Assembly (NCBI GenBank): GCA_907165135.1
Contig: OU015566.1
Location: 5,518,001-5,582,000 of the forward strand
DNA from: Oikopleura dioica
Taxonomy: Eukaryota > Animalia > Chordata
Reading direction: 5' to 3'
Length of the DNA stretch: 64,000 nt
The translations under genes and the position numbers were made by a program. Within the stretch, counting starts at the first letter, position 1; each line of letters begins with the position of its first letter. Below, piece after piece: positions 25,101 to 56,165 of this stretch. The notes beneath the pieces were generated by a model. The model was given only the letters and a program-made list of their open reading frames with translations. It ran no database searches and was not told the DNA's origin.

Positions 25101-28100
25101 CTTCGAGTGATTTTTTGGCTAATAGGGCGCCAAGATCATTCAGTGCAGCGATCTCAGCCTCCTCTTTTTCCAAATCTTCTTCATCAAGCTCGTTGTCGCC
25201 ATCTTCTGGCCTTTCATCATTGCTTGCAATTTCAAACTGAATAGAGGAGCTTTCTGAATTGCCAGCTCGACGAAGGCGCGGGTTGCCAAAGAAATGCAGA
25301 CCAGATGATTCTCGTCGTTTTCTTCGCTCCTCAGAAGTTTCACGAATGACATTTACAATTTTCACTCGACTCGGTGAAATTCCTAGAAGGGCGGCAATGT
25401 TAATAGCAATGTTACCATTGTCGTAGAACTCGTCGTCTGTCAACTGAGTCGTTACGTCCAACTCGAGAATCAGCGTTGACTTGAGCTGAAGTCCGTAGAT
25501 GTGACCTGTCTCGAGAATCATGTGGATAGCTTGCTCTTGTCGATCGAAAAATTTGATCCCGGCTCGCTGTGAGGCCCGTCAAGAGAAGGAAGATGAATTT
25601 CTCTTCGAGGTCGATCCCACTGGATTTCGTCGCCAACGTAGTGTGCGTTAGTTGGAATCATATAGATGCCGTCTTGCTTGAGGTCCAATCTATTCGGCTT
25701 CAGCGTAATGAACCTCACATGAATCTTGCACTTCTGATCATTGTAGTCCGGCAAATGGAAGTTCATTCGCTTCGGAATCGTTGAAGTGAAGGAATAGTCG
25801 TACTGATGGCCACAGGCTTGGTGAGTCCAAAAAGTGCTCAAGCGAATCATACAAGCATAGCCAATGCAATTAGAGTGATCTGCTGGCCCGTTGACGATGT
25901 CAATGTAGCCCGTGTCGGATCGAATTGCCAAGGGCGCTATTCTTCGGACCATGTGATCCACGTCCATGAATTGGAAATTCATCATTATCATTTTCAGCGA
26001 GTCTGTGCAATGCCACGCTGGAATGGAAGCATCGTAAACGCAGTTTTCATCACGAATGACTCCCTTTTCTGGCGCATACTCTTCAACGGTGAGTTTCTGG
26101 CCGTCGAGAGTTGTCAACATGCCTTTCGGAATTCGGTAATCTCCCAGTCCAGGACGAGTGTCAGTGTACGTCGTTCCATTTCTGGTGACTCCTTCCCATG
26201 CATATTCAGCCTCGGAGTGGAGGAAGCCCGGACTGCCGAGAAGGTCGCCAGTTTCATCGATAACAAGTTGTTTCTTGTGGCCATCGCAATGAAGATCGCC
26301 ACAGGATCCGATGTTGACATAGCGAGTTTTTGGTCTAAAGAACTTTGCGACTTTGCTCAGTGTAGCCACATTACTGTCGAAAGTATTTCCCTGTTTGAAA
26401 TAAGTCGGGTGCGAATAGTCTTCCATTTCTCGGTTCGCACTGAAAATAACATCCTTATCGCCACATCTTCCATTAAATTTAGTAAAAGCATTTGCCAAGA
26501 CACATGTTCGTCCGTAGATTGCTGGAATCTTCACAAACGCTTTGTACATCGGTTTTCCTGGCCATCTATTGTGGCCAACCAAGAAGTCGCTTCCGACGAT
26601 AGCAGCATGGTCACGTGGACTGCTCGTTCCTGGAAAGAACGTTTCGTGCATGTTGCCAATTTGTGAAACTTCATTGTCGACATCGCATTCCCAATGCTCT
26701 GATCGGCCGATAATAATGTTATTTTTATAAGTTATTGATGCTTTTGGGTCGAATTTCCATGCTGTAGCATCCGGTCCTGCGTGGACAGTGTAAAGCGCGT
26801 TAGAATTGTCGACTAATACATTGTCAGAAACCACTTGCCGCTGTGTCTTTGATTGAAAGTAAACCGCAGTGGTTGCATGATGAATGAAGAATCCTGATAC
26901 TTTTTGGCATCGGTATAGTTCCTGCTTCAGAATGTAATAGCCAACAATACATCCGCTGCCAACATTTCCGAAAACGTTTGGATCGCTCTCGTAGACATCG
27001 GCAGTGCATTCTTCGAGATCGCCAATGCAACTCTCACCAACACCATGGTAGCAAGGACCCATAACACCTGCAATATGGTTATTTTTCATCGTCAACCTCT
27101 GAGCGTCTTTGAAATCAATTCCAGCTGGAATCAAGGATGTATCAAGTTCTGAATTTAAGCCGTTTACGTAAGCATAAACAGATCGGTCCCAAATAGAAGC
27201 GATGGCGTTGTTTTCGACAACAGCATCGTTTCCTAAAACGCGGATACCATCTTCAGGTGCGCCAACGATGACGTTGTCTTTCATTTCTAGACCGTGAACG
27301 TCTATTCCGGAACCGATAGCAGTATTAAGGCCATGGAAGAAGGAACAACCGCGAACGTATGATTGCTTTCGATCTCCACTTGCAGTGGGGTCGACATTGT
27401 AAAACAAGAGCTGGAATCGCGAGTCCTCTTCGTTGGTGTAGCCGTACTGCCCCATTTGTTTGAATTGGACGTAGCTGAACTGTCCATAGCCAGATCGGAA
27501 AATGGTGTCCTTCTCTGTTTTTTCAACAGTGCTGGCGACGAGGACTCGTCCTCCGAGCACAGCGTTAGCACCGTCACTGCCATCAATGATGATATTTCTC
27601 GTCAGAAGCATGACGGGAGTACCGAGGTGATATCCATCCGCATCTTCCAGATTTGTCTCGATTCCGAAGTGACGAAACTGCGCAGTCTGATTCAGTGTGT
27701 AAGTTCTTGCTTGTTTTGCAGTTATTGAAAAAAACTCGACTTCTCTTTGATCGAAATTGCTAGATGCGATTGCAATTTCTTCACCAATCTTCCAGTCGGC
27801 GTCTTCACTCAGTGTTATTGTGTTTTCGCCAGGTTGGACTGTTGTTGCAAGATACGTCCAGGTTTTGTCTCTCGGACAGCCGTGCATTTCAAGTGAACCA
27901 TACCCGCCAATTGCTTTGGCTCCGATAGGAATTGAGTTTCCAAGTGCTCCGAACTCTTCTGCTTCAGTATAGTTAGCCATGAGACGGATCGTTACTTTTT
28001 TGTCGCAGGGAACCGGGTTTTCGGCAGTTCCGATGACTAGTTTTCCGATGTTCTGATCGATCAAATCTCGACGTCGGCGAGATTTGCCCCAGGTCGTTTC

Positions 28101-31100
28101 CGAAATTCCAGTATTAACAATAATCGACTCAACTTCAATTTCAATATCATCCTCAATATTTTCAATAATGAGCTCTCCATCAACTAAAAGTTTAGTTGCT
28201 TTGAGAACATTCGGCCTTTCCGGATCTCGGAGATCGTCAGGAATTGATGAAAGCCTGACCTTTCGCTTCTCGCCGATAAATACGTTCGTCTCGTTGTTAC
28301 CGTCCCATCCTGGAACTGTAAATGTCTCTTCGCAGCCGGGCTCACCGATCATGCATTCAATCGTGGCTTCAGTCGTTGTTGTTGTCGGCGGCTGGACTGT
28401 TGTAGTTGGTTCTTCGCATTGAGGATAGAAACACTTGTACATCTTCAGCGACCATTCCGCCGTTCGGCCATGAGTTCCATCGCCATAGGCGTCTACTTCA
28501 TATTTATCCGGGTAAATTCCTTTCGTGCTAGAAATTATTGGATTCTTCAGACCCCTAAGCATGTAAGTCAGTTTGTATCGCTTCGTCGTAAGGAATTCTT
28601 CGTCCGATGTAATGTGATAATCGAGATTGTTGTGACTCTCATTTGTGATCGAAGGAATTTCGTCGAGTTTAACGCCAAGGTTAGTGTAGTCAATGCGCTG
28701 ATGGAACTCGTGCGCAATATGGAGGTAATCATTCTTCTCTAAAAACAACATTTCAGCCGAATAAGTTATGTTGGTGATGTACTCGAATCCTTCGAAAGAA
28801 AGAATATGCTCTTGGCCTTGATTGAGTAGCATCATCCATCCTTTTTCGATCGGTCTGCAGACTCGGTAAGGAGAATAAGCAACGCCATAAGGCGAAACGA
28901 CACGACCTTGAGCGCCTTCTATTGACTTAGGATAAACCCCATGGAACGGAAACCTGTGTGGTTTGAATTTTCCGCCGGCGTATGGACAGACTTGAATAGG
29001 GTATAATATCGACTTTGCGTTGACTCCCTCAGGTCCTGGCCAAACAGAGGTGCAATGATTCGGGTCGTATGCATCCGAATGAGGCACGACGTAGACTTCT
29101 TCGCCGCCATTTTCAGTAAATGATCCATCGATGTCACGAATGGCGTACTCGTGCTCCCACTGAGTTGTCAGTTTTCTTGGTGAATTCGTCCAACGAACAT
29201 TTGTGTACCAGGTTAGAGCAGCACATTCGAATGTATCGGAGCCATAGCAAGGGTTGACAGCTGTACAGTAGCCATTGAAAGTTCCTGGCTTTGATGGACC
29301 GGGCTCATCAAAGTTGAAAAAATGAATGTCATGGACTGTGAAGGCAAACTCCATCCATGGAGTTTCGATTCCCATGGAACCACAGCTATTCACGTGTGGA
29401 TCATGTTTCATGCTTCCGATCACAATCGAACGAACGAATGCTTGAACATTTCCAGGGCAGTCGACGCCTGGACAAACGCCGAATGAAGAGAGGTACGATT
29501 CCTTACCAGCAAGGTTGGAAATGAAGTTATCAGATGCGATAAAATTGTGGAACTGGATGGCACCACCGGTGGTGATTTCAGCTCCTCGCTCGTTATTCCA
29601 AGTGTGGAGTCCGTAAACAGAGTTTCTGTCGACCCCTTCGGGCATTATTGCATTTTCTGGAATCTCACCAATTTTAAGCGCTTTAGGAGCACTTTCTCCA
29701 CAATCGCCGTTCGGTCCAGTCGGAGTAAGGTCGACAAAGACCCAAAGGCCGTATTTCCCAGAAGAGTGGACTGTGTTATTCCAGAATTCCCCGAGAGGGC
29801 GGTTCTTGCAGCAAATTGTATTTGTTGCAGATGGGCCAGTCGGATGTTTTGGCGAGTTATACCAGTAGCCGAAGTGGGTAGAGCCAGCTACAGCGTTGTG
29901 GCGGATGATGTTGTTCGGATTCGGCATCCAGAAGGACGAAGGAATAGCATCAATATTCAAAAGAGAAGAGGATTTTTTAGTCATCACTGCTAAATTGTAC
30001 TGCACAATATTGTCTTCTTCGATGCCATCTTCCAGGAAAAACGTTAAACCCATGACGTTAAAAGCAACATTGTGTTCAACAAGAAGATTGTGAACTCCGT
30101 GCATTGTCACAGCTCGATTGAAGCTTTCGTGAACGCTATTGCCTCGAGCATAAGTATTCGTATCAACCAAGTCACCTGTCATATGGAAATGAATTGGATA
30201 TCGGCCTAACCGGAAAGCTTGTCCGACGAAATTGAACTCGACGAATTCGATTCGAGCGGAATCGACCATATGCATAAATAAATGCCCTCCGAGCTGATCA
30301 GAGCCGACTTCGTGTCCATATCTGTTCTGAAAGCAAGTCTGGGTGCTATTAATTTTGTCGAAAGCGGTTCCGATTCCAAGCTCACATTCGTCCAGCTCCT
30401 CGACCCAGTCTAAGTTTCGATTTCCCTGGAAAAGCACATTCTTCGACAAAAGACCAACTTCAGCTCTTTGGCAGATTGTTCCCGCCCAGTCAAAACCATC
30501 TGAGCACTCGGCCATGTGGCGGTATTTTAGAGTATCATTCAAAGTCAATGTGTAGCCGTCAGCACTCACTGCTGAAATATAAGCAGTTTCGGAATGATGA
30601 AGATGCATCCGGTCACCAGTTGTTGCGATGATAACTTGATCTCCTGCAACCCAATCGTTTGCGACAGGATGAGTTAACTTAATTGTGTCGTCACCGACCT
30701 CAGCAGTTTCATCCATATGAGTCCATGAAGTGTGAACGCGGCAACCATGGAGGTCGATCGTTCCACGGCGAACTGCGAACACCTTAGCGCCGTAGATCGG
30801 GAGCTCGACAGACCGTTGATGGCCATACATCGTAATTGTTGCGTCAAAGGGAATTGAACGGTCACCAGTTGGATCGCAGAAAGGTTCGTCTTCGGTTCCG
30901 ATTTCAAAGTGTCCACCATTTGTCACGACTGCGTATTCTGTCTTGAGCTCGATGCCGTGAACTCGGTCCCAAATAACAGTTCCTCCGTCAACAATCAGAA
31001 CAGCAAGAATAGGCGTCGATTCATCAAGCAGAATCACTTTTCCTTCAGGAATGACGACAATGTCGCCTGCCATCGGTTTGCAACTGCCATCTGTGCAACC

Positions 31101-34100
31101 CCAAGTAAACGTGCTCGACCATCTGTCGACGTACCAGAATTTTAGATCGTCGGAGCTGAAAACACCGTTGCCAAAATTAACGAATTCAATCTTTGGCTGA
31201 ACTGGTATGTTGAGGCCACTGTAAGCTTCCGTCTCACAAATAAGCTCCGAGAAAGTTCTCGAAAGAGTTATGCAGACGATACCATGAATTGAGACAAGGG
31301 CGTCTTCACCTGCATCTAAGTTTGAGCCAGTAAATGTGATTCTAGTGCCACCAGCTGAACCGCCTTTAGTGGGGCTGAAACCAGAAATAAGGGGAGTCTT
31401 GGTTATATCGACGTAAATGCTCGCTTCTGCAGAAATGATAGAACCCGTCGATTTATCAGTTACTGAGAGTCGAACAACAACGATTCCAGATTGCGTAACA
31501 TGATCAAGATCTTCGAAAATGCAGGTCATCTGGGTTCCTTCAGCGTTGACTGCTTGAATTAAGCAGTCGATTCCGTCGACAAGAACAGCGGAGTTTTCAG
31601 CACTAAACCCGGCGCCGAAAAGAGTTATCGGTTGTCCTCCAGACTGACCAATAGACGCAGGCGAAACTGTATCGAGAGAAAGAGAAAAATCAACATCCAC
31701 CTTTCCAGAGAAATATCCCGTGGCTGAATCTCTTACCCGAAGACTGTAAGAACCAGCTGAAACCGAAGGCATGATGACTGTCAAAGAATCGCCGGAACAA
31801 GAACCAGAAAGCTCGTGGAAAATCTCGACTGGATTGACACCAGATTCTTTGTGGTGTCCTGGGTTGCCGCATTGAAGGTCGAAATTTATCCCCGAAAGTG
31901 TTGCATCATCATACAAAAGGCCAGTTAGAATTTGTCCATAGAATTTATCATGAGAAAAGTTTTCTCGAAGGTAGTAATTGCTCTGACTCAAGCGATAACG
32001 TCCGTCAAGCTGCAGGTGTTTTTGCCAGCGAGCGCAATCAGCAAGTTGGCGATTTACTACAATTACTGGTAGGTTATCAGCATTAGGGTCTCCATCTTCG
32101 ATTTCAAAACACTCATAATCGCTGTCTTGGTTTTTGTTGTTGGCGTGCTTGAAAATCGCGACACCGTCGGCGAATTCAGCGAAACCAAGTTGAGTGTTTT
32201 TTCGGTTCTGTTCAAAGCTATCATGATTAGATTGAAGGACAAATGAATCTAACGTTCGGCCGATTATAGCGCCACTCTCTGTGACAACTTGACAGATTTG
32301 CTGATCCTTCATCGCGCAATTCGGCACAGCACACTGGATCCATGCGGGCTCACTTTGGCCTTGTTCGACTTCAGTTGAAATATAACAGAAAGGTCCTTGA
32401 CTTCGGAAGTCGGGATTACGGCACGAGTTTCCAGCAAGATCCAAATTGGCTTCTGAGGTTGATCCTGGAATCGAAGGCACTTCTGCCCAGTTGACGCAAT
32501 CATGACCTTCAGAATGAACGAGATCGCCCCTATAGTACTGTCCTCTGTCTGAAAAGCAATCTTGTTCATCGTAAGACTCGCACACGATTTGATGAGTATT
32601 TGAGCAAGGAACAAATTTCAGCTGCGCGGAACCTACATGGTAAACAAGACAGGAATCTACAGATGGGAAAGTGACCTGGTCTGTCCATGCAACCGCAGTG
32701 CCGTCTAAGTCGTGAGTGAGCGAGTTGTCAGTCGCCGAGTATTTTATGTTCAAGAAAATATTCCCGCTCTCGGTAGAAAGAACATTTGTTATTTCTTCCA
32801 CGGACTCGAATTTCGCAAGATTCCAAAGAAAGTTTTCTCCCTCAGCAAAACAGTTGCTTTCCGCGACTGCGCTCAGTTCCTGTGGATCTTTTATTTCAAA
32901 CTTAGAACATGAGAAACCATCTCCGCGATAGATTCCCTGGCAAACGCAACTATATTGGATTCCATCGAGATTTGGCACGCATTCAGCTGCATAATGACAG
33001 TTGTGAACTCCTTCCGCGCAAGGACTCATGTTCAATACCAGATCAACTCGAAGTGAGCTAGAACATGTTCCAGTTGGCAGCTCAAGAGAAATTGAGTCGC
33101 CAGCGGAGAGATCACTCACGTCAGAGAAAGTCGTCGGGCTCTCGTTGCCAACTTCGACGAAAGTAAAGTCAAATTTGAACGAATCGTGATCAATAAACTC
33201 ATGTTCAATTTCTATCGAGGCAGCGCCTGTTATTCTACCAGAAGGCATTGAAAAGACCAATTTATCGCCAATAGAAATAATTGGACATCGAGAGCATATG
33301 ATTCCTCCACTTTGTGTAACAGTTATTGAAATATCTTCGGACCAACCATATCCGGAGACTGTGACATGCTGCCCGCCGTTAACCGATCCGGAAGTTGGAG
33401 TTATTGATTCAGCAACAAAGAGAGCATTGACTCTGACAAGTGGTGCCACATAGATTATTCCATCATCAGCAGTTCCGCTTATTGAGTACGAGCCGGCAGC
33501 AAGAATAGGAGCATCGCATGTTTGAGAATTGGTGTTTCCTGAGCACCCACTTACCATTTGCCCATCGATTGTTATTTGAGCACCATCCAAATTGACCCCG
33601 TTGAATGTTATTTGGGAAGTGTCGTGACTGATTCCAGAGGCGGGTGTGAACGATGTGATTTGAGGAGTAGCGGACAAACTGGCATAAACTGGGATCTCAT
33701 CGATGTCGAAGGAATTGTCAACATTGTAGAAATCATTGTCATGACGAAAAAAGATCGCCAAGTTCACTTGTCTATCAGCGATCTCTCCCCACATTTCAGG
33801 AGCCTGACAAATTATTTCAGTGTAGGTCAGGGACAATATATCACAACGATAGGCAGGGTCCTTTCCAAGATGAACTTCTGTTTCAACAGAAATAACATCG
33901 TCAGTTTCGAGAAGATTTTTGTCTTGAGCGATAAATCCAGCACCAGTCATCGTTAATTGCCAGCCTCCTTTAACACCGACTGAAGTTGCACTGACAGCTG
34001 TTGTAACAGGCTTAATTTTGAAACTTTTTGAACCATCATAGCTATTGTAGTAAGCTCGTCCACGCCCAGCTAGGACAAAATCGAATTGGTACTGCACTAA

Positions 34101-37100
34101 CGGGTCCATCACATTGTTGTGTTCGATTGCGTATGTGCCACTGATACCTTCTGACGCTTTGTAGAAGTTGTTTTTCGGATAAATTGCATTGCCCAATCGT
34201 TGAGAAGCAGTAAAGTGCGCCTGTGTTGTACAATCTCCGGATGTCTCGAAATTCGTTATCGTCAAATTTGCCTCCATAAATGGAGTCGACGGCCCATTCG
34301 CCACCCACTGGTCTACCACAGGTGTAAACGCCCAGGAATAAATGATCGAGTGCTTTTCCAATGCACCGTCAAATGATGAGGCACTGTTTGTCGTCGTCAC
34401 GCTACAAGCGCCGAGCTCAGATGCTCCGTCATCAGAACCATCAAGAACAGGAGGAGTGCCAATATGCGCCGCGATATGTGGCCATTTCTCATTCACTTCG
34501 CCCCATTGTCGATCAGAGAAGCTGTCTGTGAAAATGACTTCTAACCATTCAGGTCGCTCGACAGCTTCTTCGACAATTACTACTCCATTTAGCCAGGTGC
34601 TCCAGGCGTTGTCAATGTATCCGGTCGAATAATGATAAGTCCCGGGCTCTGTAAAGAGGCGGAGAAAATCTCCCGTCGATTCTATTATCAGTGGACTCCA
34701 GATTTTATCGTCTGAGGAAGCTTCATCACAATTCGGCACATCGCATTCTTGAAATTGCATCCTTGGTGCGTACCCGTTAACCGTGAATGACCATTTGAAG
34801 CGAACAGCTTCGCCAGCTTTGATTCTTACTGTTTCGAAGTTGCTTCCTGTGCTCATCGAAATTGGCTCGTTTATTGCGTACCCTGTTTCGCAAACAATTT
34901 TATCCGCGAATACTTCCTTGACGTTGCACTGATTTCGATCGCCACCTGAGAGCCCGCCGACAGCAAAGATCTCGACAGTTGTTTCTTCGTTGAGCTTACT
35001 GTTTGGAGTAATTGAGTCTGTAGCGAAGCCAAAGCCCGAAATTGTGATGATTCGGCCACCAGCAAGGGATGAATAGCGCGGATAGACGCCAGTTACTTCG
35101 ACTGCGTACTCGAAGTTGACTTTGTTCGAGAAACCGTTTTCTGCAGATGTTATTTGCAATTCATAAGGCCCTTGATCGAGCATAACTGTAACTGCTACAA
35201 TTTCCGTGTCAGACCAGCTTGTGATTGTCCAGTCACCAGAATTTGCTGTTCGAAAACCCAAACAACCGCGATGTGCGTATTTAGAATCAGTAAGGCAATG
35301 GTTTTCTGAGAAAAGTCCCTGAACGTCTACTCTTGATCCGTTCACTTCTGAACCGAATCCAGTTCCAGTAATAACCACGATGTCTCCACCAAGAACAGAC
35401 ACTTTTGTTCGCGACAATCCAGTGACTGTAGGCGTGGAATCGCTCGCAGTCTGGCGGCGTTTTCTGTTCGAGTCTTCAACAGGCAGCGTAATGCATTTCA
35501 TTTCAATGTAAGAAACTTCTCCAGGAATCGCGATACATTCTTGAAGAGTATCGAAAACTTCAATGACAAGTCCCTCATAAAATCCAATTCCAGTCACAGA
35601 GACGATTGAACCACCAAATATCGAGCCGGACTGAGGCGAGTACGAAGAAATCGTGAGTAAAGATTTAACTTTGACGTCAGACTTCGCGCTTCCAGAAGAT
35701 GGGTCTTTGAATAAAACTAGGTTTTCTCTACCTGGAACAGGACCAACAGTCACGGTCAATCTCGTGGCAACAAAGGGGATGACTTCTTCATGCGAGATTA
35801 TTTCGCATCTGCTTCCACCTATTTCAATATAGCTTTCAGCAGATACTCCAGTTGTTGCCGGGAAAATCACATCTACAGTGATTGTATCTCCTTCAGCGAT
35901 CACGTCCTCCTCGCCGACTGAAGTTGCGTAGACAACAGGAGTGTGATCTTCTGAGAAAGTAAATGAGCATCCATAAAGCATGTTGTCAGTCCATGTGTCA
36001 GGGTGCATTTCTTGCCGGTAGTGAGCACTACACTTAGATCTTTGGCGATTCGCGATGACAACTACTTCTGGAACTCTTTGAGGAATGGCCATCATTGATC
36101 CTTGAATTGTTGATTGATAAGGACCGCCCTGCCAAAAGTCATCATTGATCACAGAGAACGCTGCTGCGGCATCTGGATTGCGTTCCACGAATTCTACTGA
36201 TAGCGAATGCTCGGCCTTCAGCTGACCAAGATTGCCTCTATCAAGACCTTTGAAGTCAAAGTAGTAGCCATTCATACAGTCGCCAGTTTTGGTGACTTCT
36301 AAGTTTATTCTCTGAAGATGAGGCCACTGGCTTCGCAGTTCAGATTGGACTATTGAAGCAGATTGAGAATGGTCAAAAGAATAGGAGGTCTCCCCGTCGT
36401 CAATGCCGAAAGATACTCTTGTTGAAACATGAGAACAAACTGCCTCACTGATGTTGTGACTTCCAGTCAATGTGTAGCCACGACGAGAGTGCGCCAAGAA
36501 GTAACCAAGCCTCGTTTGAGTGTCATCCTCGTATCGCCCATTCTGGAAATCGCCGAGCCACTGTAAGCCGATGGAAGCATGATCGTATCCATGAATCTCG
36601 TTAAAACTAAATTCAAACAATTCTTCGCTTCCTTTCTCCATGAACAAGTCTTTCGTTTGCTGCTCATGACCTCGTGCGGTATAGTCAAAAAGCTGCTCCA
36701 AGATTCGTAATTATAAAGGGTTTCGTAAGACCCGTCCTTGTTGAATCTCAGAAGTCTCGCGTGAGCATCGTGCGAGAAAATCATTCTGTACCAACCGGTG
36801 CGAGGGACGAGGAAGAAGAATTGGCTTCGAGCAGAATAATGATCACGGTTGAATTGGCCACTCCATTTTGTTCTCTCGGAGCCTGAAAAATATGACGAGT
36901 CGATTATTTCGAAGTTAGCCGGCTCGTATTCACGATTGAAAGCCTCGTGTCCATAGGTGTAAGCATCTCGGTCATCGACATATCTTACTGAAGATCCTCT
37001 GCTTCCGGCAAATTCTCCAACGCGCTCACAACTTATAATTTCACACTCAACGATTGTATTGGAAGCAGTTGAGTTGCAGCTAGGAGTGGCGAAGAGACCA

Positions 37101-53563: not shown

Positions 53564-53710
53564 TTTCAAGCCTCATTTTCTGCCCATTTAATTCTATTTT
53601 CTATTTTTTTTAAATATATCTCTATTTTCGAAACTAAAGAATTGAAATCAAGGAAGACAAAAGAATCGTTTTCCTTTATTTTAAAATGCTTTTATTTCTA
53701 ATAAAGTTGT

Positions 53711-56165
53711 TTATTCTGGGATGAGCTGGATGATGTAAGCAGAAGGAAGAAGATACCAGGTGTTTTCGTCCATGTTTTGTGAAAACTCGTTGACGAGTGT
53801 GAGTTTGATTTCGTTGTCTTCGTAAACGGTGCACTCGGTTGAGTTGACCAGATTGAAGATGTACTCGGGAGAAGCGTAGTATGGCCTTTTTAGAGGAATG
53901 CGCAGAACTAAAAAAGGCTAGTTTGAGTTTGATAAATTTTAAAATATTGCACCTGAAGAGTGATCCTTGAAATCGCTGTTTTGGAGAACGTACTCGCCCT
54001 TTTCGACTCGGTCGAGCGTCATTTGGTGGAAGAAGAGAACGCCGGAAGAAGGTAAATAGGCGCCGGTGACTGTTGCAGGACGAGTGAAGGTGAAATTTTC
54101 GTTGAGAGTTACTGAATTCGGGTTATATTTGTTTTCTTTGTGATTAAATGCCTGTATGGAAGTGACAGCTTGATTTAACTGGACAAGATTTTGCAAAAGG
54201 TTTGTCTTCGAGGTTTTTTTGTACTCCTCTGATGATGTGCCATCCACTTCTCATCAGATAAGTTTTTTTGCAAAGCCGATTCAAAAGAATCTCGATTTCA
54301 TTTTCTTGCTTTTCTTGTTCTTTGTTGTTCGGATTCAAATTGAGGCCGGCCAAACTTCGCGGAAAGACGATCGTAGTCAAAGTTGCCAGAATTTTTTCAA
54401 AGGTACAAAAACCGTCTTCGTCTACGAAAGCAAGGTCATTTTTGATGGCGTGTCGGAGAAGAGTGGTGACTGAAATCGGGGCGCAAAGTTGACTGGTTTT
54501 TTGGTCGAAGACGTTTTTCGTCAAATTTTTCATGTCTTGATTGACGCACTTTGTCGCGTTTTGTTTCAAATTCGACATTTTGCAGGATTGAGTCAAGTTT
54601 GGATCATCAAGGCAAAAAACGGTTGACGCGTTTTCCAGCGAAATTATTTTCGTGACTTCGGAGATGAAACCAGAGTTGGTAAAAAAGTATACTTCACCCG
54701 CCCTTCAGAATGAAGTATACTTCCGAGCCATTTCGTACTTCAAATTGAAGTAAGCATTATGCGCTTCAAGATTGAAGGGCGCCCTGCAGATTTTTGAAGC
54801 GCAGGGTGAAGTATACTTTTTTACCAACTCTGGATGAAACTGCGAAGTGATGAATAATTATAGAATCTCTTGAAATTTTTGATTGAGGATGCCCCACACT
54901 CCTTCAAAACAAAAATTACAAAATCGACAAATCAAGCTCTTACTTCAACAATTTTATCAATTTCTTTTCTTTCGCCATCATCGAGTGGTTGGTACAGAAG
55001 TGTCCACGCAGTCTTCCAATCGCAGAAAAGGAAATAATAAAGATTTTGAGCTAAATAACCAGCTACACCCGCGATTTGACCATGAATACTGAATCCTGGC
55101 GTCCCAGCAGCTTCGAAATTTTGTAAAAATTGAAGATTTCCAAAAACTTACCAAGAGCGCCAAAATGTTTGTATTTTGATCCTCTCCTGGCGTACCCCAT
55201 TTTTCGGTAGCCTTTTCGACCGGTTAACTCCCTAACGAGCCCGAAGTCAATTATTTTCGGAATTTCACCAACAATCACAATGTTTTCGAATTTCAGATCG
55301 TAATGCTCAATTCCACGACTACTCAAATATTCAAATCCATCAAAAATTTCATTCGCAATCATCCTTCTCGTTTCCAGATCAATTCTTTCTTCTTTCAACA
55401 AAGTCCTTAAAATCGCCTCTCCCTTTTCCATAATCGTAATCCAGCCCAAGCAATCCTTCTTCTTCTCGTCTTTCTCGTGAAAAAGCTCAACATTCACAAA
55501 GTTATGGACAACGTTTTGATGAAATGGCATTTGATTCTTCCCCTGTGATGATTCTTCTTTTCCTTTTGCTGGTTCAAATTCTCAAAAAAAACTTTAAAAA
55601 TATATCTCAAAATCCCGTTTCTACCTTTTGAAAGATGTATCTCGCAATCAAATCCGTCCTCTTCAAATTCCTTAGTGAAAAGAAAAGGATCAAAAACCTG
55701 CACCCGCACAACTGTCTCAAGACCTTCGAAGTTTTCAGCGATCACAATCGCTTCTCCTCCTCGTGAAAGCAGCTTCTTTTCCAAATCGTCATCTAATCGC
55801 CAATCAACAGACTCTTCATTGATCTCCCATCGTCCGATTGTTCTTTCGATAAGAAAGGGATCATTTTTAAGAACTTGCTTTTGCAATTCTGTTTGCTCGA
55901 ACTTCTCAAGATTTATATTCTTTCTGTCGAAAATCATTCCCCGGCCTTCTTCATAAAATCTTATAAATTCCCAACGAAAAGCATTTTTATCATCCTCAAA
56001 ATCAAGTCGCTCAACGGATTCCACAAGCCGGCATTTCTGCGTCCGCGAAGTCGTCCTCTTCAATTTCGGAAGAAATTCTTTCAGCCAACATTCAACTTTC
56101 TCTCTTTCCAGTTGAGATGGATGGTCAATGATTTCAACATTGTCAAGCTCTATTCTTTTCGCCAT
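53711..56165 (-). CDS. Atypical protein kinase-like domain fused to a papain-like cysteine peptidase domain; exon interrupted by hAT MITE
   Basis: SRGGEAIV, HYDLKFEN, IIDFGL, GTPGF; then DQKTSQLC and FHQMTL..VLQNS; introns include a 40-nt GC-AG (54112-54151). Confidence 0.8.
54671..54832. mobile_element. hAT-type MITE (162 bp)
   Basis: 8-bp TSD GATGAAAC (54663-70, 54833-40); 29-bp perfect TIR CAGAGTTGGTAAAAAAGTATACTTCACCC. Confidence 0.92.

Follow-up and report, generated by a model that had tools for sequence, protein, structure and literature searches.

A transposon-interrupted gene of Oikopleura dioica belongs to a large family predicted to pair an atypical kinase domain with a papain-fold domain

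Given that one locus of the chordate Oikopleura dioica had been predicted to join a kinase-like domain to a cytosolic papain-fold peptidase, the question arises whether the two halves form a single protein, and to which folds and families each half belongs. The locus lies in a stretch of 64,000 nucleotides (the window; C4:5,518,001-5,582,000), in which three-frame translation of the minus strand together with reading of the DNA gave a six-exon gene at 56165-53711 (minus strand; window coordinates are used throughout). We propose that this locus is probably one paralog of an Oikopleura kinase/papain-fold family of more than 100 copies, that a miniature inverted-repeat transposable element (MITE) has inserted into it, and that its product would be a two-enzyme protein. 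Genome searches covered the 64,281,565-base, 19-contig assembly, exon translations were searched one by one, and structure models were taken from two annotated relatives, P0098 and P0079, as stand-ins.

In the family, both halves are carried by one polypeptide. The paralog L016 has a single uninterrupted open reading frame of 635 amino acids that takes in the N-terminus and the kinase and reaches the exon bearing the peptidase Cys, and the six exon translations of the present locus are colinear with annotated O. dioica proteins of ~700 residues. Counting the architecture, as the original prediction had suggested, gave at least 10 annotated O. dioica proteins with all six exon equivalents and at least 131 genome matches to the Cys exon, most of them without stops and most ending at one exon boundary. 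These matches lie on contigs C1, C2, C4, and C5 and cluster densely near C1:16.1-16.6 Mb and C2:11.6-12.7 Mb; the closest paralog, L013, is 90% identical in the Cys exon. The predicted fusion is borne out at the level of the family and is uncertain in this copy, where the MITE lies between the halves. Matches were found to 59 clusters among 1.84 billion representative proteins, and a profile search of 5.8 billion sequences returned 174 proteins, all of them from O. dioica or from unnamed short metagenome contigs, every named homolog being from O. dioica. The family thus appears, from these searches, to be restricted to Oikopleura and to number more than 100 copies. In the literature searched, neither a paper on the family nor a characterized animal protein with this pairing came to light, the latter as had been expected.

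The sequence motifs on which the prediction was based are all present at codon level. In the C-terminal half, DQKTSQLC supplies the Gln (codon 54503-54501) and Cys (54485-54483) of a Q-x5-C motif, and HQMTL...LQNS supplies the His (54028-54026) and Asn (53980-53978) of an H-x15-N motif. In the kinase half, HYDLKFEN contains the catalytic Asp (55299-55297), DFG is found within IIDFG (Asp codon 55248-55246), and TVVRVQ places an Arg (55706-55704) at the position of the kinase β3 Lys. These motifs are not chance occurrences, since conserved columns of the family hold them: the peptidase columns retain Gln in 42/43, Cys in 38/40, His in 34/38, and Asn in 27/33 sequences, while the catalytic-loop Asp, Lys, and Asn are each present in 34/34 and the DFG Asp in 33/33. 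The β3 Lys position is Arg in all 31 family members compared, and the short loop S-x-G-G-E-A (GGEA) is essentially invariant. Every one of the key kinase and peptidase residues of the family is retained in this copy.

For the peptidase half, the P0098 model scores above 90 in the predicted local distance difference test (pLDDT) for most of residues 141-370, and all 50 of its 50 best neighbors found with the exhaustive aligner VIA are clan CA peptidases (Z 5.9-9.9). The highest ranked are Der p 1 (Z 9.9; 163 residues aligned, root-mean-square deviation 3.7), Der f 1, and xylellain (Z 9.7), and the list also includes the C39 domain of PCAT1 (Z 9.2) and cathepsin B (Z 9.1). Foldseek, which by itself gave no significant peptidase match, returned a weak and mixed list (best E 0.015) in which papain-fold peptidases were commonest, and a language-model search for look-alikes pointed to the Peptidase_C1 and C39 clusters with borderline scores of 0.90-0.92. 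Cys144 of the model stands at the start of a 17-residue helix (143-159), with the Gln positioned six residues earlier; His277 lies within a strand (274-285), and Asn295 follows directly after another (290-294). By secondary-structure position, this is the nucleophile/His/Asn/Gln arrangement typical of clan CA. The structural case rests on the uniformity of the VIA neighbor list and on the placement of these four residues.

Sequence comparisons gave a different picture. Pfam returned no peptidase match at E up to 10 for the exon pieces and 26 relatives, and nothing consistent among the relatives; weak Pfam matches of exon pieces to MAGE, BING4CT, and TANC1 were set aside as noise, and EsaI, the lone match of a peptidase-only profile search of the PDB (E 0.57), as chance. 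A scan of the genome with PF00112 found 19 exon matches, which came from ordinary C1 genes, and zero family loci. When the family profile was compared by hhalign with a 29-sequence cathepsin-L alignment, the probability was 0.07%, a weak negative as both profiles have an effective sequence number (Neff) of only about 2.5-2.9, and a thin alignment of the C1 exons of the same genome likewise showed no link. Since structure recognizes the papain fold and sequence methods are silent, we conclude from the models that the peptidase half probably represents a new sequence family with a papain fold (clan CA) and not a member of C1. The description of this half as matching papain is accordingly upheld for the fold and for the Q-x5-C and H-x15-N spacing, and fails for any sequence link to C1.

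The kinase half is recognizable from sequence as well as structure. Exon 2 alone matches Pfam Pkinase (PF00069) at 50.6 bits (cut-off 31.7; E 2.3e-13), a sequence search of the PDB found DAPK1 at about E 1e-6, with weak similarity in the catalytic-loop region only, and PDB searches using either P0079 or a mixed profile gave kinases and nothing else. The fold test was run on the relative P0079, which has a mean identity of 57% over the exon pieces, and not on this copy. The P0079 model (pLDDT 83; predicted template modeling score 0.82) has structural neighbors that are all kinases, with a Foldseek E of about 1e-6 and Z of 9.1-10.5 for the best 50 VIA neighbors; of the Foldseek comparisons proposed beforehand, that of the kinase half gave a clear outcome and that of the peptidase half the weak and mixed one described above. 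The catalytic loop HxD-x-K-x-x-N and the DFG motif are present, and the β3 (VAIK) Lys and the GxGxxG loop are absent, with VVRVQ and S-x-G-G-E-A found instead. Additional atypical traits are the lack of an APE motif, a shortened C-lobe, and an N-terminal extension of ~130 residues, and no long helix was assigned by DSSP between β3 and β4 of the P0079 model, i.e. no long αC. The activation segment is very conserved and basic (G-R-x-x-Y-R-x-M-G-Y-x-R-R/K-G-S-K-x-R). The Pfam match, the structural neighbors, and the family columns support the prediction of a real but atypical protein-kinase domain, and they confirm what had been noted from the sequence, namely that the catalytic Asp and DFG are kept, that the Gly loop is shortened, and that there is no obvious β3 Lys.

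The activation segment of this copy (55170-55235) also contains the sequence RRGSK, an RRxS-type phosphorylation consensus. Its Ser is kept in 27/35 members, and the neighboring residues are kept in 30-35/35.

The gene begins with an ATG at 56165 and ends with a stop codon at 53713-53711, both read from the three-frame translation, and its five ordinary introns are short (41-46 nt) and all GT-AG; in the Okinawa O. dioica assembly OKI2018_I69 the median intron is 49 bp and 11% of introns are non-GT/AG (PMC8008620). Exons 1-6 match P0079 in order at residues 37-199, 202-341, 343-397, 431-560, 580-631, and 635-697. Exon 1 (55625-56165) is an open frame that holds the start codon, the ~130-residue N-terminal region, and then the kinase N-lobe with the short GGEA loop and the β3 Arg. 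It is followed by intron 1 (55581-55624; 44 nt, GT..AG), placed by the frame change between the open reading frames and by its splice-site ends. Exon 2 (55152-55580) encodes the kinase core, identified by the Pfam match and by column conservation, with HYDLKFEN, DFG, and the conserved basic activation segment, and is separated by intron 2 (55111-55151; 41 nt, GT..AG) from exon 3, the P0079 residues matched by the two exons being one split codon apart. Exon 3 (54944-55110) encodes a remnant of the kinase C-lobe (GTPGF, CDWKTAW), seen in translation and in the P0079 match, of which the F and the two W do not vary across 39 sequences. Intron 3 (54902-54943; 42 nt, GT..AG) is also present in the paralogs L013-L015.

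Exon 4 spans 54901-54225 with the MITE included. Its upstream part (54833-54901) encodes linker sequence, and its downstream part (54225-54670), assigned by translation and conservation, encodes the conserved linker, the peptidase Gln and Cys, and a helical sub-domain. Intron 4 (54179-54224; 46 nt, GT..AG) joins two reading frames; L014 and L015 keep GT...CCAG at this place with a variable interior, and nearly all genomic matches to the Cys exon stop at one residue, which supports the boundary. Exon 5 (53953-54178), also placed by translation and conservation, encodes the peptidase β sub-domain with the His and Asn, and intron 5 (53908-53952; 45 nt, GT..AG), placed by translation and splice-site ends, leads to exon 6 (53711-53907), which by translation and comparison with relatives encodes the last peptidase strands (WYLLP motif) and the stop codon. 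An AATAAA polyadenylation-type signal was read 15 nt past the stop (53691-53696). Among the relatives, L013 has an intron after the Cys exon (about 2462-2512) that seems to end in AC and not AG (ttttccac), the acceptor being non-canonical or else disabled by the change, and in L014 (G000:C5:5794300-5798300) a short stretch with the N-terminal DHPSQLE segment is duplicated ahead of the exon 1 equivalent, at about 620-760. Elsewhere in the window, a single open frame of 3727 residues is found on the minus strand at 25518-36701.

The MITE, to which the original prediction made no reference, is a 162-bp element (54671-54832) with CAGAGTTGG... terminal inverted repeats that lies inside exon 4, between the kinase and peptidase halves. 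It is flanked by an 8-bp target-site duplication, GTTTCATC, one copy of which forms the last 8 nt of the upstream exon part (54840-54833) and the other the start of the downstream part (54670-54663); the inverted-repeat arms extend over 51 nt at 86%, flanks included. An inverted-repeat extent of 206 nt was replaced by the 162 bp and 8-bp duplication after comparison with the empty sites of the paralogs. The three closest paralogs, L013, L014, and L015, read through the insertion site as coding sequence, and because the MITE is absent from all three, the insertion is young. The element has 130 matches across the genome, from which we estimate that probably a few dozen elements exist. It is tentatively classed as hAT-like because of its duplication length and CAG termini, these alone, a transposase not having been sought; the duplication, the terminal inverted repeats, the many copies, and the empty site are all features of a hAT-type MITE. 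A member of the same MITE family, ~420 nt long, is present in the kinase exon 2 of L013 (G000:C5:6846255-6846676; about 956-1378), and two close paralogs have in this way been hit independently by one MITE family.

Between the kinase and the catalytic Cys lies a linker (54500-54630) whose ~50 residues are among the most conserved in the family, with N-L-T-K-S kept at 36-39/43 and a second N-L-T-K-N, and which nonetheless has a pLDDT below 50. Three or four N-x-T sequons occur in it overall, those of this copy being NLT, NAT, and NLT. The linker could serve as a functional motif, as a pro-segment, or as a site of cleavage. Two public O. dioica models, P0111 and P0108, are peptidase-only, P0108 starting at the conserved Met of the linker sequence QMSNLKQ, and these models could reflect either genuine stand-alone proteins or genes split in annotation. 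As originally described, there is no signal peptide and no propeptide of the I29 type in this copy: the N-terminus is hydrophilic, no membrane-spanning stretch was seen, and the kinase precedes the peptidase domain in place of a prodomain. The nearest paralogs likewise have hydrophilic N-termini with no membrane-like stretch, and the maximum 19-residue hydropathy of this copy is 1.35. Because of these properties the protein is predicted, by default, to be cytosolic.

On the explanation that we favor, the intact protein would have ~680-700 residues in four parts, an N-terminal α/β region (~130 residues), the divergent kinase, the ~50-residue linker, and the papain-fold domain. The exons have evolved under purifying selection, and the 162-bp MITE inserted into the linker exon later; in-frame GT-AG splicing would then remove the MITE to give the fused protein, and otherwise translation would end after the kinase. 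The product is envisaged as a cytosolic protein with two enzyme halves: the kinase-like half would bind nucleotide or phosphorylate, possibly at the activation-loop Ser of RRGSK, and this would be coupled to thiol-peptidase activity of the other half. Gating of the peptidase by phosphorylation and a role in immunity or cell death, both raised in the original prediction, are conceivable, and the copy number, clustering, and divergence would fit a fast-evolving family of the defense or conflict type.

Several observations weigh against this explanation. By the tool's own guidance, VIA Z-scores of 8-10 rank as middling, the Cys/His/Asn geometry was judged by secondary-structure positions and aligned ranges and not by three-dimensional distances, and no sequence method ties the peptidase half to any peptidase family. 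The kinase half may not phosphorylate anything, because of the β3 Arg and the lack of a long αC helix in the model. Some Bergen-strain models begin with a hydrophobic stretch, which may partly be a retained intron, and because of these N-termini and the N-x-T sequons of the linker a secretory route could apply to part of the family. In the present copy, the exon-4 frame (...SFIQSW) meets a TAA at 54823-54821, four codons into the MITE, and the MITE with one copy of the duplication adds 170 nt, a +2 frameshift; the removal of the MITE by splicing is a prediction from sequence alone, and of the two GT-AG pairs that would restore the frame, one has a weak, duplication-derived donor (GTTTCA).

These last points raise the question of whether this copy has recently been killed, with the MITE retained, translation stopping after the kinase, and the mRNA degraded or yielding a kinase-only fragment with no peptidase half. 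Because a MITE with an in-frame stop parts the two halves, separate or truncated products could arise at this locus, and a fused protein is predicted only if the MITE is spliced out. The youth of the insertion, the related and longer element in exon 2 of L013, and the tolerance of large families to the loss of single members would all be consistent with a recent death. Against it, each of the other exons has an open frame and no catalytic residue has been lost. The ratio of nonsynonymous to synonymous substitution rates (dN/dS) against the three paralogs is also low, 0.33-0.37 overall and lower still, 0.14-0.25, in the peptidase core exons, which argues that this copy was constrained until recently. 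Two canonical GT-AG pairs would moreover remove the stop in frame: one runs from GTAAAA at 54824, a donor that overlaps the in-frame stop, to an AG ending at 54703, giving a 122-nt intron wholly inside the MITE, and the other from the GT at 54840, derived from the duplication, to an AG ending at 54656, for an intron of 185 nt. The proportion of non-GT/AG introns annotated in OKI2018_I69 (PMC8008620) points in the same direction. We regard the death of this copy as a serious possibility that falls somewhat short of an even chance. The element itself, with a good donor and a matching acceptor, could act as a ready-made 122-nt intron.

A comparable, slightly less than even chance is given to the kinase half being a pseudokinase, a nucleotide-binding or docking scaffold that transfers no phosphate and would bring substrates or regulators into position for the peptidase. 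A Lys-to-Arg change at the β3 position usually inactivates kinases, and its invariance in the family speaks against a standard kinase; the Gly-rich loop is cut down to GGEA, the P0079 model has no long αC helix, and the pseudokinases ULK4 and IRAK3 are among its tied structural neighbors. However, pseudokinases usually lose the catalytic-loop Asp or Asn or the DFG Asp, and here these are invariant in 33-34 sequences. The invariant Asp, Lys, Asn, and DFG argue against a decayed pseudokinase and for a retained catalytic or metal-nucleotide function. For the C-terminal domain, the papain fold and its triad could instead serve an isopeptidase/deubiquitinase-type enzyme, an amidase, a transferase, or a module that cuts only its own linker, and not an endopeptidase. 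Here the VIA neighbors include Atg4, UfSP, ZUFSP, the pseudomurein isopeptidase PeiR, the phytochelatin-synthase-like Alr0975, and C39 leader peptidases, with Z within 2-3 of the cathepsins, and the linker preceding the domain is highly conserved yet modeled with low confidence; the clan also includes many non-protease activities (PMC10318531). We consider this unlikely, though worth keeping in view, as the best-scoring neighbors of the peptidase half are mostly C1 endopeptidases. The Gln-x5-Cys and His-x15-Asn spacing, moreover, is the one found in papain and in C39 peptidases. A bolder version of our proposal would see the family as an invention of this chordate lineage, more than 100 clustered, fast-diversifying intracellular kinase-protease sensors or effectors acting in defense or genetic conflict, in which phosphorylation releases the linker, acting as an internal pro-segment or as a site of self-cleavage, and small GT...AG transposons are tolerated in exons as instant introns; we offer this as speculation with a low probability of being right in full.

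The kinase fold and the papain fold are each well known, but their union in one animal protein is undescribed in the literature searched, and the same is true of a peptidase domain of this kind that falls outside all domain libraries. The family occupies more than 100 loci of a genome that is among the smallest in animals, and its host is a chordate from which many standard genes have disappeared; this implies a strong lineage-specific need, for which the usual suspects are defense, reproduction, and genetic conflict. The family also bears on the requirements for kinase activity, since it combines an invariant Arg in place of the key Lys with catalytic residues that are fully conserved. The locus itself provides a natural test of splicing rescue after a fresh transposon insertion into an exon in Oikopleura.

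Compared with the C1 peptidases (PF00112), including Der p 1, xylellain, and cathepsins B, L, S, and K, the Oikopleura domain has a two-lobed papain fold in common (Z 9-10 over about 150-165 residues). In both, the Cys opens the central helix with the Gln six residues before it, and the His and Asn are 16 apart on neighboring strands. Unlike C1 enzymes, the Oikopleura domain lacks a Trp both after the Cys and in the N-S-W position, has no signal or I29 sequence, and sits behind a kinase. The C39 leader peptidase domains of PCAT1 and ComA have Z of 8-9, tied with C1, over fewer aligned residues (about 125). They have an equivalent Gln/Cys/His/Asp-or-Asn arrangement and, like the Oikopleura domain, are peptidases built into larger multi-domain proteins. 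They differ in being bacterial, transporter-fused, and about 130-150 residues long, whereas the Oikopleura domain has about 240 residues and a larger helical lobe, and no Pfam C39 match was found for the exon pieces and 26 relatives.

Generic kinases such as DAPK1, CaMKI, GSK3, and Chk1 have in common with the Oikopleura kinase half the Pfam Pkinase match, HxDxKxxN, DFG, and the kinase-only structural neighbors. No kinase group is favored among them, as all are tied at Z 9-10.5, and the Oikopleura kinase half is set apart by the Arg in place of the β3 Lys, the GGEA loop, the absence of APE, the short C-lobe, and the ~130-residue extension. The pairing itself has a precedent outside animals: a review of papain-like enzymes describes the plant EDR1 domain as a papain-like fold that resembles C71 and C93 peptidases and frequently occurs joined to a kinase (PMC10318531), so that plant EDR1-type proteins provide a non-animal precedent. 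PF14381 was not matched at E up to 10 by the exon pieces and 26 relatives, and there is no sign of common descent between the EDR1 proteins, which are plant proteins having a TKL-type kinase with a normal Lys, and the Oikopleura family. The EDR1 domain is N-terminal, an order that is the reverse of that in the Oikopleura protein. What the EDR1/CTR1-type Raf-like kinases (PF14381 plus kinase) and the Oikopleura family have in common is a papain-like-fold domain and a protein kinase in one polypeptide.

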